A DNA stretch of 64,000 bases from Epithemia pelagica (taxonomy: Eukaryota; Protista; Bacillariophyta). The position numbers and the translations under genes are program-made. The stretch covers positions 682,001-746,000 of the forward strand of contig OX337242.1 of assembly GCA_946965045.2 (NCBI GenBank), in the 5' to 3' direction. Shown here piece by piece: positions 1 through 9,200 of the stretch. How positions within the stretch are numbered: the first letter of the stretch is position 1; each line of letters opens with the position of its first letter. The notes below the pieces were generated by a model. It was given only the letters and a program-made list of their open reading frames with translations, did no database searches and was not told where the DNA came from.

Positions 1-3000
1 CTTGGCGATAGTTGTACTGGTCGGGATCCACATCAGTATCTTTCAAACACCCTCCTTTCACCCCAGCCGTCCATTTGGTTTGAAGATTATCCAATTTTGT
101 TTGCATGGATTCCCATGCATCTTTCATGACTTTGACCAGTTCCGCTTGCGACAGGGCCTTGCCACCGACAGAAGATTCGAGTGGCACCGGTGTGGCATCT
201 TCAAAGACATTGAGAAGAGGAGGTGGTGCATTGTGCTTAGCTCCAGGATAATCTGATGGGTCATACAACAAGTGAACAAAGTTGGCGTAGGCGGTGGCCA
301 TGGCCACATAGGCCAAGGACCGCCATTCGTCCACGGCCGGAGGGCCCCCATCCTTGCATGTCTGCGTACTTCCCAACCGTGGGTCCATGGCGGAGGCAAT
401 GGCTGTGGTCCCGTAAAACTGATGACGAATAACCAAATGGTTGATTGAATCGGCGGCAAAGGTAATGAGACCCTTCAACGTTTCGAATTTTTCATAGCGT
501 GCTGGTAGTTTGTGGAAAATACCCTCCAATGCTTGGTAATAATCCTGCAATGCCTTGTCGTTCTTCACATTCAGATCATTGTTCTGATAGACCTTTTTCA
601 AGATATCACTAGCATAGGATTCGAAAATCTCATAGTAGTCCAATTCCCATTCCAACTGATTGGCTACTGGTGGCTTCATTCTGGAGGCATAGTCGGGGGT
701 TCCCTTGATCATGCCATTCACCTTCTTGCGCTCGTCAAAGTCCTCATCCGATGCGTAGGTAAAGCGATCGTAAATTCCCGTCAAGTAGTCGGTTAGGGCT
801 CCGTATTTGAGGGCAAACACTTGGGAAAAGACGGCATTCTCCTGAACCAGATGTGCCGTAGTGAGCTCTTGGGCCAGACCGTGGGAAAACAAGTGAATGT
901 ACAACATGACACGGAGTGGGTGGCCATTGAAATCGTTTAGTCCACCGTTCTCATTGGTGCCGTTACCCACGTTCAGGGCATAATCAAACATGTTGATGTT
1001 GGCTACTTCCAGCAAGTTGTAACTGTCATGAAAGTGGAAAAGACGAGCAGCGAGTGAGTTTCAGGATTGTTTGAGAACTTGTCCATGTGGAATCAGAATT
1101 CAACGTACGTCATGTGAATTCCCGCCAAATGCTTTCCGGCAACAACAGAAAAGTACAGAGAGGACACGACCATGGCTTCGGCCCGGCGAAAGATGGCTGA
1201 CTTCTTTTGGACCAATGTCTTGTATTCGGTACGGGGAGCCACAACCCATTTGAGTTTAAGGTTCTTGCTCCCATTGACACCAAAATAGGCAATACCGCCA
1301 TAGGGTTCATAGTCGTTCTTTTCTTCGTATTGTTCCAAGTGACGAAAGTCAATCACCAATCCGATCTCATCATTCCCATGATTAAAGATGCCGTTGTTGT
1401 CATTGGTGACAAGTTCAAAGAAGGGGAAGGAGGTGGTTTCTTTGGCACGTTGCAAAAACGTATTACCAATACCATACTGGGCCAGGTAGGCGAGGTATTG
1501 ACCGTCCTTGAAACTATCCACAGCTGGTTGGGGTGCATACTGCAATGTCTTACCCATAGCTGGGAAGTCAAATAAGGGAAGGGAGAACAAGTTGGAAGGG
1601 TACCGTTGTTGTCCATCTTCAGTTACACCCAAACGGACCTTATATTGAAGGGGCGTCTCAATATTTGCTTGAGGCAGAAAACGGTCGAGTTTGGCAATCA
1701 AACCAAATAGTTTTGTGACCCGCTGCACGAGACTTCCAGCATTTTCCAATGCTGTCTGTGGAAGACCATCGGATATGGCCGGAACGGCCATGTTGGATGC
1801 CACTTGGTAGGGATGCGATTCGGAATAGGGTTGCATGCTGACTTTCTTTGGAGCTTTGCTTTTGTAGACTTCACGTAGTGCCTGAGGTGCTGGTGGAGAA
1901 GGATTTCCCACCAAGACAAAATAAAAGACAGACCAGACAATGTAACTGATTTCGGAACGAAAGGATTGGTACAAGAGTGGAAAGGTCTTGAATACGGTGA
2001 ACACGGCGACGGCAATGGTGCCCAACACATAGGGCCATTGACGTTCGTAAGATTCCTTGGAGAGGATGGCAGCTTCCACTGCAGATCCGACCGTCTCTTC
2101 TTGACCTCTTCCTTTCGCCAGCAAACGAGAGAGCCAGGAACCGGTAAGTTCTTCCTTGCTGTTGCCAGCCAACATGAGAGCCATGTACAGACAAACGGCT
2201 CCCATGATACTTAAAACGTGAAAATAAAAACTCTTGATTGGCGTGGCAATTGTTTGCAAAAAGGCCAACAATTGAAAGACTGGAGCCATGGCCAAAGTAT
2301 ACTTGACGGCATTTCCACCGGCCACAGCATCGCGAGTCATCTAATATAAAAATCACATCAACGAACATACAAGCAAACGTGAGACATTGCATGTCTCTTG
2401 TTCTCACCAAAACAAACGAACACGTACCACAAAGAAAAATTCAGTCACTTGAATTCCCATCATAACGAGGGGAAGCATATCAGTTCCACCCAATACACGG
2501 TATCCACCCCAGAATAATCCAATGGATAAGGCCACCACCATAAAAATGGAAATGTACATCAAGGTCTTGAGAAAAGGAACGTCCTTCGAAGGAACCATGA
2601 GAGCCGTGGCAAAAAAGAAGAGCGTCGCCACAACAGGTCCACCGTTGAGCTCTCGCAAGCGACTGATAAAGGTGGTGAAACGATTGAAGGATTTATCAAA
2701 CGGATGTCCCATCAACAACATGACGCTTTCAAAGACCCATCCCAAGGTGGAACCGTAGATGGTAAAGTAAAAGGGAAGCAAGGTCCAAAGAGCACCGTCT
2801 TGTTTTCCATCCGATGGCTTGGACAAAACATCCTTCTTACAATACTGGAAGAATTCAACCGAAGTGTTTTCTGTGTACAAGATGTTGGGAAAGAAACACA
2901 CAACATTTTCGATGTAACACATAAAGGAAGGATAGCCTTGGTCATCGGTTTTGCACGTCGGACCATTATCTTTGATCAAGTGAAAGGCAACGGACGGCTG

Positions 3001-3162
3001 GTTCAAGAGTCTGACCATATAGATGGCGATTGCACTCATAGAGATCAAACTGGCAATGGACAAAAGAGAACCGACGATACTGAACTTAGCTTCATCAGGA
3101 GGCTTACTGGGAAAGCGCTGGTCGGCATAACCCTTGAGAAATTCATGACGATATTCGCTCAT
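1..3162 (-). CDS. Multi-transmembrane domain fused to a divergent lipoxygenase-like domain (3' end runs off window)
   Basis: Exons 3162-2428, 2340-1109 and 1022-<1 join in frame through GT-AG introns at 2427-2341 (87 bp) and 1108-1023 (86 bp). Exon 3 has no stop to the window edge. LOX-type motifs: KHLAGIH (H-x4-H), HPLRVMLYIH (H-x8-H), VYQNNDLNVKNDKALQDY, RHQFYG. About 8 hydrophobic segments lie in the first ~390 aa. Confidence 0.75.
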
Positions 3163-4826
3163 GGTCGTGTGCTGTTGAATGTGTTCTTTTGGGTTGTATC
3201 TTTTTGGATCAACAACTTACGATAGTTTTGTGAGAGGGCTCCGAATCTGGACTGTGCTTGTCGGCCGACCGACGTGTTGGTTTCAGCTGGTACCTCATGG
3301 GCAAGGGGCATAATTATGATCGATGACGACTGCGTTTCAGGAGGGTCATTATTCCTATATACGAGCTCCATCAATCGATATGTTGGCGCTCAGTTGCCCG
3401 TGCTTCACCTCGGTGAAACTTCCGGCCCTACGAGATTCACTTCACCATACATTTTCCTGAAGTAAAATGAATTGCCCCACATCGACAAGATGTTCTCGTA
3501 AGGTTACCACACTCCTACCGATGAACCTTTCACCATGACGTGGAGGCGCTTCCCCTTTCTGTACGAGAAGTAAAAGTACTAGGACTACGAGTAGATCAAA
3601 CTGCACGGCTTCCTTATGATAAGTCTATTACGTTGCCACCATCACTGCTGCTTGTTGTCGTTGTTATAGGGGATTGTTTCACTCGGCCGAAACGAGGTTG
3701 CGTTTGGTGTCGTGTCGCGGCACAGGATTGTCTCGTTCGGCCAAAACAAATTGATAAGTGTTGAGTTTGTTGTAGAACCGTAGAAATGAAAGAAATGGAG
3801 AGCAGTTGATTGTTGCGTTTGGTGTCATTGTCGTGGTCCCAAATTGTTGAAACGACGAGTTGATTGTAATGATTGGGACAAGAACTGCAATGCGAGGCCA
3901 AAACCAGTTGATTGTGTAATTCCTGGTATCTGTGATCATGGTTGTGGGTATTGTATCATCATCACCATCCGATGGATTGGTCATTGAGGTTCCCTGTCGT
4001 CCAGTTGTAGCGTCGTAGGTCGTTGTTGTTCCGTTTGTCAACGTGCCAAACAGTTTTCCGCTTACATGGCTCTTCGACCACTGCCACCACAGCTCCACTT
4101 TGTCCACTCCTTCTTCCACTCGAACTATGTTGTCGGAAGGAGCCGCACCACCGGCACCAGCATCGGCGGCGGCGGCAGTAGAAGCAGTCCTTCCACATGT
4201 GGTTGCGTGTTTGTTGTTTCGTCAAACCAAACTTTTGTTGCGTAAGAACCACCAATCCGATGAGGCTTTGATTTGGTGGGTTCGGGCCAAGGAAAGATGA
4301 GAAGTTGATTGTTGCATGCGGATGGAAGATAAGTGAATTGCTGTATTCATTCCATCCAGTCTCGTCGTCTTCTCACGGTCACTTCCTTCGTTGCGGTTGC
4401 CGAGATTCTTGTCATGTTTGTGCTTCGGAATCCTCCAGTTGATTGCCATGTGTCCTTGCTGCTGCTCTCCTTCGCCTCATCCATCCATTTTGGAGCTTCC
4501 ATTGTCGTCCCTCCTTGCAATCATGGTTCATTCCATCTTTATCCGACTCCAATCTTGATCCTCTCGTTGCTTCCTTCCAACCTCAAAATGGAAGGTCTTC
4601 TAAATCTTGCCGTAGGTCGATGAAACTAGCCAACTCATCCCTTCCCGTCCATTCCCTCACGGTACACATAAAGATCAATAGGGTCCATTCGTCCGCTTCC
4701 AATTGCATCAAATCTGTGTGTGTTCATGCCAATTCTCTACTATATAATATGGTGTGCTTATGGCGCTGAGTTGTTTCGGAGTAGTGTAGCGTTTCTCGGT
4801 TCTAGTAGTGGAATCGTCGATCATGG

Positions 4827-5819
4827 CTACTGCCAACAGCTATCGCTCGTGCCAATTTCCTGTTGTCGGTCCAAGGTCTCTTGTTCGGCCTTTTCCCATT
4901 GATCGGACGCCAAGGTCAATGCTCGATCGACCCAGGCAATCCGTCTCCTTTGATTGGCCACACTGTGGGGTCGATACGAGGGCAACCCTTGTCGCGCCCA
5001 ATACAGTGCTTCCCCCATGTCTTGATTTCTCAAGGCAATCATAATGAGCACGGGAAAGACATCAAAATGCCACGGCTTGAGCTGCAGCGCTTGGAGGGCC
5101 AGTTCTTCGGATTCCTCCGACTGACCCTTCATGAACAAGAGAATGGACAAGCGGGCTCGTGGTTCGGCCCAGGTCGGATACTGGTCCATCATGTCTCGAA
5201 GCTCTTGTTCTTCTACGGCCATGCCAGGTGTACATTCGCGTTGCATGGCTTCGAGTTTGGAGGCGGGTTCCGGTCCATGCTCGTACATCCACAAGTGCAT
5301 GAGTTCGTCCACGACCGATGGTTCCAGCGTGCTAATGTCTTGTTCATACGACGACGAGTCGTCTTCGTCGACATGTTCCGTTTCCAGGACGGTATTGACC
5401 GCAAGCTGACGCAAGAGATCCATTTCAAGTTGCCGACGACGACGTCCAGCACTCGTCATGAGAGTCACAGGAACAGTGTGGTGGTCGTCGTCGTCGAGTC
5501 GGTTCTTATGGACGTCATGGGTGGAAGCGACAAGATTTTCCAGGGTATTCCGGGCCTGATCCAAATCTTGAATCTGAATATCACGATTCTTCTTGTTTCT
5601 CTGACCATCACCGAGGTTGGTTTGTCCCTGTTTGTCAATGGTGGAGAAGAGTCTCGATGTCGTCGTCGTTGCGACCCCTGGTTGTCTTGTCGTCGTCGTC
5701 TTGGACGTTCCGAACGATTGCACCCATGCAGCTTCGCATACAGAACCTGATGTCCCCAACAGCACGAGAAGAAGAAGAAGAGAAGTAATAGAAGACAAGG
5801 TCAAGGGAAGAAGGAACAT
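4827..5819 (-). CDS. TPR-like alpha-helical protein with signal peptide, probably plastid-targeted (intact copy 1)
   Basis: Open frame (track ORF 4827..5831; ATG MFLLPL at 5819). Hydrophobic leader ending VCEAA|W; a W at +1 fits the diatom ASAFAP-type rule. TPR-like helices WAEPRARLSILLFMKG...ALQLKPWHF. Confidence 0.7.
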   Translation of the reverse strand: MFLLPLTLSSITSLLLLLVLLGTSGSVCEAAWVQSFGTSKTTTTRQPGVATTTTSRLFSTIDKQGQTNLGDGQRNKKNRDIQIQDLDQARNTLENLVASTHDVHKNRLDDDDHHTVPVTLMTSAGRRRRQLEMDLLRQLAVNTVLETEHVDEDDSSSYEQDISTLEPSVVDELMHLWMYEHGPEPASKLEAMQRECTPGMAVEEQELRDMMDQYPTWAEPRARLSILLFMKGQSEESEELALQALQLKPWHFDVFPVLIMIALRNQDMGEALYWARQGLPSYRPHSVANQRRRIAWVDRALTLASDQWEKAEQETLDRQQEIGTSDSCWQ

Positions 5820-6227
5820 GATCAGGCACACACTCTTGTTGTTTGGCAGGTAAGGTATTCGTATTTCGTATCTCGCTTCCCTCGTTTTATATGTTTGGTT
5901 TGTGAGATGGATTTGTTCCTTGGCATGGATTCAATCACCGAAGACGCACGAAAGACCATGGAACCAGATTGCTGCAGATGTTGTTGTCGACAGACACGGA
6001 AGGAAATCTGTCCGAAATCTTCCGCGACTGGGTTGTACCAAACACGACCGAAAAGAGACTCGATCGCGCCCATCCGGGCATACCGGCTGGCGCGATTGGG
6101 AGAACCGGAAACGGCCACATTTTGGTGCATTGTCTGCTGCATCACACCACAACAACGAGACACAGGGAGCCACTGGAAATGAAATGCTTGGGTGGTCTTG
6201 CTGGGATCCTCAAGCAGTAATAATAGT

Positions 6228-9200
6228 ATGGGAATATCCGGACTCTTGCAAGGGTTAAAGCCTTTTACAGAAACTCGAAATGTTCGAGACTTTTCCAATC
6301 AAGCTCTCGCCATTGACGCGTCTTCCTGGTTGCACAAGTCGGTCTATTCCATTGCCGATGTGTACGTGGAGGCCATGGAAGATAATGGACGACATTGTCG
6401 TGACTCGAAATGCATTGAAACTTCGGCAAAATATGTGGTCAAGCGATGTCAGGAATTACTCTTATACGCCCACATATCCGCCCTCTATCTCGTTTTAGAT
6501 GGCACACGGTGTCCCCTCAAGGCCGTGACCAATCACGAACGAGAGCAGAAACGACAACAATCGTTGGATGAAGCTCGAGCATGTCAACGTGCGGGAGCCA
6601 TGCATTACAAAGTCTTTGAAAAGTACAAGACATGCATTAAAATTACAGCAGACTTTACTCAAGTTGTCATGGAACGAGTTGCCAAACTGCTCCGAAACAA
6701 CCACCACAACAAGAAGAAGGATGCGGTCCATATCATTCAATCTCCCTACGAAGCCGATGCTCAATTGGTTGAGCTGTGTGTCAGCGGTAAAGCTCAAGCC
6801 ATTATTACCGAAGATTCCGATGTACTCGTGTATTCGGCGGCCTGTCGTTGTGTCTTTCCGGTCTTATTCAAGCTGGACCGCAACTCGGGGTCCTGTCAAG
6901 TCTTGTCCATGTCCTGGTTACTCGATCCACAACACAACCAACAACTTTCGACTCACTACCAACGTAGCGCCACGACTGTCACGGCCTTGGAACTCATTTT
7001 GGTCCAGTGGATGCGGGAAGAGCAACGAGAGGCTGGACGGGGCGCTCGTCTCTTTGTCCAAGCCTGTGTCCTGGCCGGCTGTGATTATGCACCTAGCCAA
7101 TTGTCGGGCGTGGGTCTGGTCAATGCCTTTAAGCTCCTTGATCGACAACGACACCGCAATCCCAATCGACGCTTTTCCTACGCCTTGCAGCAGCACCACC
7201 AGAATACCAAACAAAAATCCTCCTCCTCACGTCGCAATCATCCCACGACCAGCCATTCCAGGGATCACCACCACACGTATGAACGTGTCTTGTCGCAGGC
7301 CGAAGCAGTCTTTTATCATCATCCCGTGTACAAAGACAAGCTCCGCCACGTAGCGTACCTCAACAGTATCGACCAGGATGGTACTGGAGAGAGACCTTGT
7401 CTCGATCGGTTCGACCACCAATTGGAATTTCTCGGTCAAGTGGGGCATGATGGTACTGCTGCTGCCATGGGACCCACACGTCGTCCTACAATGACTACTG
7501 CTAATGTTGCTGCGGTATCCAAACCAAAAAATCCCCATTCCTTTTTTGTCTTAGCAGCACCGACTGCCACCTCACACAACCAGAACACCCACAAGAAGCC
7601 CCGTCCACCGGTTGAGGAGGTTGTCGTCGTTGTCTCAGAAAGTCGGAAACGCAAACGCACCACCAAACAGCAAGCTCCCGCAGTCCAGCGACCAGTCCTC
7701 CAAACCAAAAATCCCTATCGAAAGAACCAACGAGATTGCGAACTTGTATCAGACTCACCGAGACGACAAGAGTCGTTGATTCGGCCCAGATCGTTTCACA
7801 AGCATGCGAACAATCCTTTTGAACAACATCGCCATTCGTACAACAATAATGACGATGACAATAAGGAAAATCGACCACCCTTGGGCAGTGCTATGGAATC
7901 CAGACCAAAGGCCCAACCCAGCAAGAATCCCCAGAAGAATGCTCGCCATTTTGGGGATGTTCGATTTGTCAAACCCAAGTTTGACCGAGACGGAAAGTTG
8001 ATGTATCCACCCAAAGTCTTGGAGGCGAAGCGTGCCTTTGAGGCAGCACGAAGGCAGCCACGAGAAATGACTGCTGGTGGCACCCTTTCAGGTTCACAAC
8101 TGGATACACGACTTTTGACACGTGTCCAAAACGCTCACATTTCGGCAGGCTTCATAGTTGGGGAAACAACCCACGGGTACGAACCAAACGCCCTTGGCAA
8201 TAATTGCTCCAACTTCGTGACAGAGTCGCGAAATGATCAGGATTGTTTCCAAAATGAAATGGAACGAACGAATGAAACGCCCGTCGATCGTTTTGTCGCC
8301 GATGGCGACCCGTACCCTCCACCACATGATGAAGAGGATCCAAACGGCATTCTCCATGATACAGAACAGAATGTCGTCGTGGAAGTTCTTCCGCCTCCCC
8401 TTGCTTCCCATGGCGGCTCGCCAACCATGAATCTACCTCCAGAGTGGATGGAACACAATGAGCAATCCGTTATGATACCAACAACCATGGCTTCCCCTTC
8501 CCGTGGCGGCTCGCCCACCATGAATCTACCTCCTGGGTTAATGGAACCCAATGAGCAATCCATTGCACCAACCACGGCTTCCCTTTCCCGTGATTGCTCA
8601 CCCACCATGAATCTACCCCCAGAGTTGATGGAACCAAACGAGCAATCCGTTGTGATACAACTACCAACAACCATGGCTTCCCCTTCCCGTGGTGGCTCAC
8701 CAACCATGAATCTACCTCCGGGGTTAATGGAACCCAATGATGAGCCGTTTCAAGAAAATCCGGGTTGCGATCATGGATCGCCACTTTCTGAAGTTGCAGA
8801 AGACGTACATGTACATGAACATGATGTGTCCACGTTGAGCAAGTATTTCTCCACGGGCCGAAACGAAAAAAGAGTAATGGCTCGGAGGGTCACGCTCGAA
8901 GAGTCACCCAAGCCGTACCATGAGTCGCAACGGCTCGACGAACTTGGCGGTATTCAACGCGACCAACCTTTTGATATGTATGATGATTTCTTTTCACCCA
9001 GAAAGAAAGACGGTGGTGAATGTTTTAATCACCTGGAGAAGCAAATTAGTGTGGAGGAAATCGAAGATGATAGTCCTGAGCGGACCGCATTACAGGTTCC
9101 TCCGTCCTCCTTTGATATTGAGCCTCCAAAGCCCCAGAGTCGTATAGGGCCGGCAAAGACGACACGAGTTCGATTTGAAGCTGGGGGCGCTCGATCTCGT

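Follow-up and report, generated by a model that had tools for sequence, protein, structure and literature searches.

A spliced diatom gene joining a polytopic membrane domain to a divergent lipoxygenase fold

Classical lipoxygenases (LOXs) are soluble, or peripheral to membranes through a PLAT domain, and mammalian 5-LOX depends on a separate membrane protein, FLAP. Diatoms produce LOX-derived oxylipins, and these compounds influence grazer reproduction and bloom dynamics. The gene presented here lies at the start of a window of 64,000 nucleotides (nt) from the diatom Epithemia pelagica (contig OX337242.1, positions 682,001 to 746,000; coordinates below are those of the window) and encodes a polytopic membrane domain followed by a LOX fold. 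The family to which it belongs, called TM-LOX here for its transmembrane (TM) and LOX parts, has members in eukaryotes and in several phyla of marine bacteria and is a new architectural variant in the LOX superfamily. Its members are probably integral-membrane, non-heme-metal fatty acid oxygenases.

Giordano et al. (2024; PMC10968607) found no more than two diatom LOX proteins with a correct annotation in the databases, and further candidates were gathered by similarity to them. The TM-LOX family is directly relevant to diatom oxylipins because similarity searches that start from those two proteins cannot see it. The same paper makes no mention of membranes, and the family pattern (HLAEIH together with HLVVRHQ.YGT) is not in its Table S2. 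A literature search found no description of a polytopic-membrane LOX or of a LOX fused to an integral membrane domain. An integral-membrane LOX that is conserved from marine bacteria to diatoms, and that both Pfam and NCBIfam miss, would constitute a new class of LOX architecture.

A single spliced gene

The gene comprises the following exons and introns.

2428 to 3162, minus strand: exon 1, 245 codons from the ATG at 3162, encoding the N-terminal tail, TM1, the Cys-containing loop, and TM2 to TM5
2341 to 2427, minus strand: intron 1, 87 nt, GT..AG, with a TGA in frame
1109 to 2340, minus strand: exon 2, 410 codons plus 2 nt, encoding TM6 to TM8, helix 9, a linker, and the N-terminal half of the LOX-fold domain
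1023 to 1108, minus strand: intron 2, 86 nt, GT..AG, phase 2, interrupting a Thr codon
1 to 1022, minus strand: exon 3, one base plus 340 codons in the window, with 20 codons and a stop beyond position 1, encoding the C-terminal half of the LOX-fold domain

The three exons (3162 to 2428, 2340 to 1109, and 1022 to 1 plus 63 nt past the window edge) belong to one spliced gene, whose product of about 1016 amino acids (aa) consists of a membrane domain of about 390 residues followed by about 600 residues of LOX fold. By open reading frame (ORF) listing and translation, the exon and intron boundaries were exactly those of the original prediction, which had been made from the letters and ORFs of the window and had proposed one protein of more than 990 aa. 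Within the window, 996 codons are present, and the length of about 1016 aa is given because P0001, the genome's own ORF call on the 1.59-Mb contig, extends exon 3 past the window by 20 residues to the C terminus ..NYMYFRPMPRDIHTGPGY (..HTGPGY). The start of exon 1 aligned with the N termini of homologues. Searches and folds were run with single window exons or with intron-less homologues, and residue numbers of the spliced protein are arithmetic only. Both introns begin with GTACG and finish with AG, as expected from the proposal of two in-frame GT-AG introns; intron 2 is not strictly in frame, because 86 nt is not a multiple of 3 and the intron splits a Thr codon.

Splicing of intron 2 was observed in a contig of read run X6 that joins 1022 to 1109 and skips exactly 86 nt, with ends that read CT..AC on the plus strand. 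The kind of run is not on record for X6; it was read as likely RNA because its depth was low over exons, near zero over introns, and uneven. The DNA-like run X3 contained the unspliced locus at an even depth of about 128. Spliced X6 contigs covered the exons, metatranscriptome contigs were 95 to 99% identical on exons 2 and 3, and homologues P0005, P0025, and P0007 were uninterrupted across the site of intron 2 (..IHMTYNLLEV..).

As a point against a single gene, intron 1 was bridged by no read contig, the X6 pieces ending at 2284 and restarting at 2485; the check for spliced reads came out positive for one intron, and the support for the other was comparative. At its junction (..EFFFV / MTRDAVAGG), eight homologous ORFs (P0026 to P0033, mutually 56 to 59% identical) ran through colinearly and without gaps. 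A second copy of the gene, L001, carries an intron at the same position with conserved exon flanks, an unrelated intron sequence, and a different length. The ratios of nonsynonymous to synonymous divergence (dN/dS) between the window gene and L001 were 0.20 for exon 1, 0.15 for exon 2, and 0.11 for exon 3, at dS values of 0.7 to 1.1.

That two genes, one for a membrane protein and one for a LOX-like protein, had been wrongly joined would be in keeping with the unbridged intron 1 and with prokaryote-style gene calling, which yields three ORFs at the locus, and was judged barely credible. Exon 2 by itself is a single ORF in which four membrane helices are followed by some 220 residues of the soluble domain; the first His couple of the LOX fold is among these residues, and P0023 is 78% identical to exon 2 along its full length. 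The fusion of membrane and LOX parts is independent of either splice because exon 2 alone encodes parts of both. Homologues are also continuous over both junctions, and the bacterial versions are single ORFs. The case of two separate genes, against which the original prediction had been set, therefore failed.

The lipoxygenase fold and its predicted metal site

The C-terminal residues, about 600 in number, have the LOX catalytic-domain fold; within the LOX superfamily, the family is a distant outlier. The fold was tested on P0005, an intron-less homologue 55% identical to the window protein, whose AlphaFold2 (AF2) model (predicted local distance difference test [pLDDT] score, 68; predicted template modeling score, 0.74) covers the whole soluble domain. 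The top 50 Foldseek matches of this model in the PDB were all LOXs (E values of 2e-10 to 8e-8), with 132 matches at an E value of ≤0.001, and VIA-align superposed 387 to 440 residues on LOXs (Z, 24.4; root mean square deviation [rmsd], 3.6 Å). Residues 10 to 578 of the model correspond to LOX residues from about 165 to the last; therefore, the chain ends coincide and there is no equivalent of the PLAT domain. Pfam likewise matched no PLAT/C2-like domain, and the N-terminal half is helical and hydrophobic instead. Among the 30 clusters nearest to exon 3 in ESM features, 27 were LOXs (score, 0.97).

Profile comparisons pointed the same way. A profile of 20 sequences gave only subthreshold matches in the PDB, to LOXs (E values of 0.27 to 1.1), and the family profile with bacterial sequences added matched ALOX12 at an E value of 1.8e-4, with LOXs making up 13 of 13 matches. 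Alignment by hhalign of 26 family members with 13 LOXs positive for the Pfam LOX model (PF00305) reached a probability of 99.95% and an E value of 1.4e-38 over 386 columns. The family is small, because an exhaustive profile search of 1.84 billion representative proteins returned only 125 at an E value of ≤1e-3; all 10 scanned matches in the weak tail of that search were PF00305 positive. A long branch, with 4.2 changes per column, separates the family from the nearest Pfam-positive LOXs.

The direct sequence models count against a LOX assignment: neither the three exons nor 20 family members matched PF00305 at an E value of ≤10, and a full-length bacterial protein had no match to it at an E value of ≤0.01. 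Searched separately, each exon matched no Pfam model at all at an E value of ≤10. Single-sequence PDB searches returned nothing for exon 3 and one chance match for exon 2 (thioredoxin reductase; E value, 1.7), and NCBIfam and PADLOC contained no family for the TM-LOX protein. The original prediction of a divergent LOX-like domain was borne out in both respects, in that the structural and hhalign comparisons gave a LOX fold and the Pfam LOX model was blind to the family even at an E value of 10.

Four motifs correspond to LOX sequence elements.

1114 to 1134, minus strand: KHLAGIH, the H-x4-H of the first metal-ligand couple (in the spliced protein, approximately H649 and H654; in P0005, H227 and H232)
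893 to 922, minus strand: HPLRVMLYIH, the counterpart of LOX HP[IL]x[KR]LLxPH, H265 to H274 of P0005
536 to 562, minus strand: NDKALQDYY, the counterpart of LOX D.eLQ.W in hidden Markov model alignments to ALOX12 and ALOX5
407 to 439, minus strand: HLVIRHQFYGT, with the second His as the third ligand and Thr at the fourth position, which is Asn or His in LOXs

The His pair of KHLAGIH was invariant in 26 bacterial and eukaryotic sequences and aligned by hhalign to the HL...H couple of LOXs. The motif residues of HPLRVMLYIH were also invariant and aligned to VHPIFKLLVAH of 5-LOX and to HPlRrlL.pH. These two motifs and the D..LQ.y element had been named in the original prediction, and all match their LOX counterparts in profile alignments. 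The Y-N-Y near the window edge (QYNYRQ), also named there, is not the conserved element, which is an NYxY located just past the edge.

In P0005 numbering, the hhalign columns paired H428 with His, G432 with Gly, and T433 with Asn. H428, the second His of HLVIRH, was invariant and aligned with ..TAQH of ALOX12 and with the His of HExVGN; G432 and T433 were invariant in the 26 sequences, and the second couple of the family reads H-Q-x-Y-G-T. The H-x4-H of HLVIRH was considered as the second ligand couple and rejected, since the hhalign register made its second His the third ligand and placed Thr at the fourth position. The first His (H423), five residues before the third ligand, was invariant in the core clade, had no LOX counterpart, and was missing in deep branches. 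Y579, the last residue, is at the position of the C-terminal carboxylate and was nearly invariant in the 26 sequences. The C termini coincided (model residues 576 to 578 against LOX residues 660 to 662 of 663), and the hhalign register was the same. The ..GPGY end was kept in all complete members of the core clades, diatom and bacterial, and deep-branching members retained the terminal Tyr. The family thus shares with the LOX superfamily the fold, profile homology, and three His residues, its C terminus aligns in the LOX register with Tyr as a putative carboxylate ligand, and it departs from the superfamily in the Asn/His ligand and the match to the Pfam model.

The membrane domain, bacterial neighbors, and predicted function

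Helix coordinates in the membrane domain were mapped from hydropathy and from the AF2 model of the homologue P0026, which is of low confidence (pLDDT, 57).

3004 to 3078, minus strand: TM1 (hydropathy, 2.16; helix 33 to 57 of the P0026 model)
2839 to 2955, minus strand: loop after TM1, with four Cys residues and an N-x-S/T sequon, predicted to be extracytoplasmic
2713 to 2790, minus strand: TM2, with W, P, G, G, and E invariant across bacteria and eukaryotes
2596 to 2682, minus strand: amphipathic stretch rich in Lys and Arg (RLRxLN) and TM3, from the P0026 model
2509 to 2580, minus strand: TM4, from hydropathy and the P0026 model
2428 to 2475, minus strand: TM5, ending at the border of exon 1 and intron 1
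2251 to 2313, minus strand: TM6, from the P0026 model
2158 to 2238, minus strand: TM7, preceded by an invariant TP.KS..FH motif
1984 to 2037, minus strand: TM8, from hydropathy and the P0026 model
1909 to 1980, minus strand: helix 9, with an FRSE.SY..WS motif, aromatic rich and weakly hydrophobic, a ninth TM segment or an interfacial helix

Nine long helices were modeled in P0026, of which eight were clearly hydrophobic and the ninth was aromatic and weakly hydrophobic. This agrees with the original count of about eight hydrophobic helices, and the Cys-containing loop that had been noted after the first helix was also present; it was long and contained Cys and the glycosylation sequon in eukaryotic members only and was short and Cys free in bacteria. 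Segments rich in Lys and Arg in the bacterial proteins were located in the N-terminal flank, in loops 2, 6, and 8, and in the 30 residues after helix 9. The charge distribution favors an interfacial position for helix 9 over a ninth span, and the sequences suggest eight spans plus an interfacial helix, with the N terminus and the LOX domain in the cytoplasm and loop 1 outside or in a lumen. Across bacteria and eukaryotes, 57 positions of the membrane domain were at least 92% conserved. Because invariant polar residues lie inside helices (the conserved residues there included E, R, N, three Q, H, S, W, and Y), the membrane domain may be more than a passive anchor.

The original prediction had not recognized the membrane domain, and the same held in the database searches: no Pfam or NCBIfam family matched, ESM Atlas features gave no usable match, the ESM Atlas structure search reached TM-scores of ≤0.28, and Foldseek matches in the PDB, mostly G protein-coupled receptors (GPCRs), had E values of ≥0.07. 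No sequence relative outside the TM-LOX family was found in these searches. The MAPEG/FLAP fold was matched neither in Pfam nor among the listed structural matches, and the domain has 8 to 9 helices against 4.

In the wide VIA search, helices 1 to 7 of the model superposed on seven-transmembrane (7TM) proteins (Z, 11.3 to 14.9; rmsd, 3.2 to 4.5 Å; about 200 residues), Z values that are common for helical bundles. The top 50 matches of this model were all 7TM proteins, namely, GPCRs, microbial rhodopsins, and others. These matches, with the prevalence of GPCRs in the Foldseek list, would be expected if the protein were a lipid sensor or receptor, in which a 7TM-like domain is coupled to a LOX fold that only binds lipid. 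Such a role was considered improbable: the model is of low confidence, the Z range is one that any helical bundle may reach, and no Foldseek match was better than an E value of 0.07. The invariant ligand His residues, the HPxR motif, and the exact C terminus are also what a working metal site would be expected to show, and the lipase genes beside the bacterial homologues fit metabolism. For the sensor offered as an alternative in the original prediction, the 7TM-like arrangement in this model is therefore a weak hint only.

A scan of prokaryotes with one genome per species returned 27 bacterial loci, in Moritella, Oleispira, Litoribrevibacter, Litoribacillus, Marinicella, Saccharospirillaceae, Aureispira, Saprospiraceae, Chitinophagales, Polyangiales, and metagenome-assembled genomes of Chloroflexota and Acidobacteriota. 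At 23 of the 27, TM-LOX was one uninterrupted ORF of 803 to 912 aa (840 to 912 aa in Moritella, Oleispira, Aureispira, and others) that had 6 to 10 hydrophobic segments toward its N terminus and ended in ..G[PA]GY; two Polyangiales loci (L006 and L009; wrong frames at high GC) and two loci with short ORFs (L012 and L029) are outside these architecture counts. The intron-less bacterial versions included those of the cultured Moritella sp. PE36 and JT01, Litoribrevibacter euphylliae, Litoribacillus peritrichatus, and Marinicella marina.

A gene for a patatin-like or class-3 lipase adjoined TM-LOX at 17 of the 27 loci. The neighbor was a patatin (PF01734) at nine loci by Pfam and at one more inferred from an identical layout, and it was a Lipase_3 protein (PF01764) at seven. 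In Moritella sp. PE36 (L015), TM-LOX occupies 4165 to 6843 and the Lipase_3 gene 6922 to 7935, and in Aureispira the partner is a patatin. Other neighbors were mutually unrelated, ordinary housekeeping genes. Two unrelated acyl-hydrolase families at the same position argue for a shared lipid pathway, and this is the strongest functional clue. Among the carrier genera, Moritella, Aureispira, and myxobacteria have known synthases of polyunsaturated fatty acids (PUFAs) (PMC5067506).

The best-supported function, strengthened by these neighbors, is that of the self-contained membrane-embedded fatty acid oxygenase suggested in the original prediction, and the protein is probably an integral-membrane oxygenase with a non-heme metal. 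PUFA dioxygenation with Fe or Mn is a candidate activity, suggested by the lipase and patatin neighbors. In such an enzyme, the metal ligands would be both His residues of KHLxxIH, the carboxylate of the C-terminal Tyr, and, in HLVxRH, the second His. The invariant Thr at the Asn/His position would be a weak ligand or none, with the extra His upstream as a possible replacement. A PUFA drawn directly from the bilayer would serve as substrate, and the neighboring patatin-like or class-3 lipase could release it at most bacterial loci. The membrane domain takes the position that the PLAT/C2-like domain has in classical LOXs, and it would provide in cis the anchoring and lipid hand-over for which 5-LOX relies on PLAT docking and FLAP.

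Several observations weigh against this function or this topology. The canonical fourth ligand, Asn or His, is absent, its aligned position being Thr in all 26 sequences, and the terminal residue is Tyr and not the Ile or Val of classical LOXs; because of these two differences, the metal site may differ or may bind another metal. No adjacent lipase was present at 7 of the 24 bacterial loci with flanks examined, and the correlation of TM-LOX with PUFA producers is anecdotal, coming from individual genera. The nine modeled helices place the LOX domain opposite the N terminus, in conflict with the charge-based topology, and the model that places them is itself of low confidence.

The LOX-fold domain may alternatively be catalytic without being a primary dioxygenase, as an isomerase, epoxyalcohol synthase, or lyase-type enzyme acting on hydroperoxides or other lipids, like eLOX3, or as an altered metal centre acting on membrane-esterified lipids. 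This was regarded as unlikely, with appreciable weight given to it. The invariant Thr, the extra His that is invariant in the core clade, the terminal Tyr, and the long branch would all suit such a change of chemistry, and the genome may have classical-type LOXs for the first step, several groups of diatom LOXs having been listed by Giordano et al. Against it, the three His residues and the C-terminal carboxylate are conserved in the same register as that of active LOXs; recognized diatom LOX groups tolerate Ser, Gln, or Ala at the fourth position, as judged by modeling only; and the adjoining lipases fit the provision of free fatty acids, on which LOXs usually act.

The lipase neighbors could also be read as part of a bacterial module for membrane damage or defense, in which TM-LOX and a phospholipase hydrolyze and peroxidize either the cell's own lipid or that of a competitor and the eukaryotic copies represent a derived use. 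The patatin neighbor is weakly similar to phospholipase effectors of cyclic oligonucleotide-based antiphage signaling systems (CBASS) and of other antiphage systems. The bacterial clade is short branched with phyla mixed, which suggests a mobile cassette, and the lipases of Moritella and Oleispira are 95% identical. Such a module was accorded little likelihood, because the similarities are far under the curated cutoffs (31.8 bits against 200 and 19.2 against 400), TM-LOX had no PADLOC match, and the other neighbors are ordinary housekeeping genes.

In the two Moritella loci (L015 and L031) and the two Oleispira loci (L023 and L027), which belong to two different families of Gammaproteobacteria, both TM-LOX and the class-3 lipase were nearly identical (lipase, 95% aa identity), and the cassette looks recently transferred. 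The Oleispira loci have a second lipase, 34% identical, upstream on the other strand.

If the oxygenase reading is taken further, TM-LOX could be a missing piece of marine oxylipin biosynthesis, a membrane LOX that draws PUFAs or lipids containing them from the bilayer, with a 7TM-like substrate gate, and that combines the roles of FLAP and LOX and has an unusual metal site giving its own chemistry. This extension is possible and was held tentatively; if true, it could explain LOX-type products in diatoms and PUFA-producing bacteria that have no recognized conventional LOX gene. The bacterial versions are intron-less, come from cultured strains, and lie beside a candidate lipase, and they are therefore testable by ordinary expression and liquid chromatography-mass spectrometry. 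If active, TM-LOX enzymes would be of interest for the biocatalysis of mediators derived from eicosapentaenoic acid and docosahexaenoic acid.

Relatives and known systems

All six eukaryotic loci examined (the window and L001 to L005) had a TM ORF directly upstream of a LOX-like ORF, and introns differed in place among them. L001, a second full gene copy, is on a contig (ctg1301l) other than that of the window (ctg1353l) in assembly ERZ21939226. It has the same intron positions as the window gene and 66 to 83% aa identity to it, at the dS values given above, and is an old duplicate (paralogue) or homeologue; a sister species was rejected as its source, because L001 is from the same assembly as the window contig. 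A loose end of X6 at 1106 was the intron 2 sequence of the L001 copy. A third, more divergent paralogue (P0009, 53% identity) was found on the same 1.59-Mb contig (L003; ctg1353l:399165-410490), also with a TM plus LOX-like layout, over three ORFs. One eukaryotic subclade (L002, 2780 to 2900; P0027, P0029, and P0030) has a conserved intron right after ..IPAI.G, at the border of the membrane domain and linker, where the window gene is continuous. Intron positions vary by subclade, because the L002-type intron is absent from the window gene.

In the tree, the eukaryotic sequences formed one clade (support, 98) that was sister to the sampled bacterial clade (support, 95), and deeper TM-bearing members fell outside both. 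A simple gene transfer from bacteria to diatoms is not shown by this tree, since the eukaryotic and sampled bacterial clades are sisters.

Three further features of the locus were observed in the read contigs. An X6 contig of 3120 nt with a depth of about 129 covered 1 to 602 and extended 2.5 kb past the window start, against a depth of 2 to 7 over the remainder of the gene; this points, at the 3' end of exon 3, to an overlapping or antisense transcript of high abundance or to a long untranslated region of a neighboring gene. Immediately upstream of the gene, at 3361 to 3600, X3 depth rose from about 130 to between 1200 and 6900, with many short variant contigs and loose ends, and this segment is a repeat with some tens of copies (high copy number). 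At 3205 to 3210, about 45 nt upstream of the ATG, an X3 contig had 35 other letters in place of 4 nt, an indel polymorphism that distinguishes the reads from the assembly.

Compared with described proteins, the nearest detectable sequence relatives of the family (hhalign E value, 1.4e-38) were the Fragilariopsis cylindrus-type diatom LOXs (groups IV and V; PMC10968607) and soluble PF00305 proteins (P0116 to P0159). These proteins are of 540 to 650 aa without an obvious PLAT domain, and they share with TM-LOX the HL...H couple, HPxRxLxxxH, and a second couple with an extra residue (H-[EQ]-x-x-G-X). A second couple of H-x4-N/Q/S/H with a one-residue insertion is known for the Fragilariopsis-type LOXs, and H-Q-x-Y-G-T of TM-LOX has the same six-residue frame as their H-E-x-V-G-[N/Q/S/H/A] (PMC10968607). 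Unlike TM-LOX, these relatives are soluble, with no hydrophobic segments, and score over the Pfam LOX threshold; their X is N, Q, S, or H and their end is ..SVxx, whereas TM-LOX has Thr and ..GPGY.

The classical iron LOXs (soybean LOX-1, human ALOX5, ALOX12, and ALOX15, coral 8R-LOX, Pseudomonas aeruginosa LoxA, and Cyanothece CspLOX2) have the same catalytic fold (Z, 19 to 24), with the three His ligands and the C-terminal carboxylate in register. Their identity to TM-LOX is 10 to 14%, and TM-LOX has no Pfam match. They carry PLAT or helical N-terminal extensions where TM-LOX has a polytopic membrane domain, an Asn or His ligand where it has Thr, and a terminal Ile or Val where it has Tyr.

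Other LOXs are also fused to a partner of the same pathway, as in coral allene oxide synthase-LOX (3dy5) and in a heme peroxidase-LOX (P0151), but those partners are soluble heme enzymes, unlike the membrane domain of TM-LOX. P0151 and P0153, from the tail of the large profile search, have 1115 to 1143 aa; P0151 is an An_peroxidase (animal heme peroxidase) joined to a LOX by domain scan, and P0153 resembles it in length and match position only.

Functional analogy is provided by the cPLA2/FLAP/5-LOX system and by plant DAD1-type lipase with 13-LOX, in which a lipase frees a PUFA and a membrane protein presents it to the LOX. FLAP is a four-helix MAPEG protein to which the 8- to 9-helix membrane domain of TM-LOX has no similarity. 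In TM-LOX, the lipase would be the product of the neighboring gene in bacteria, a coupling suggested by gene order alone, and the membrane part is fused to the LOX itself.

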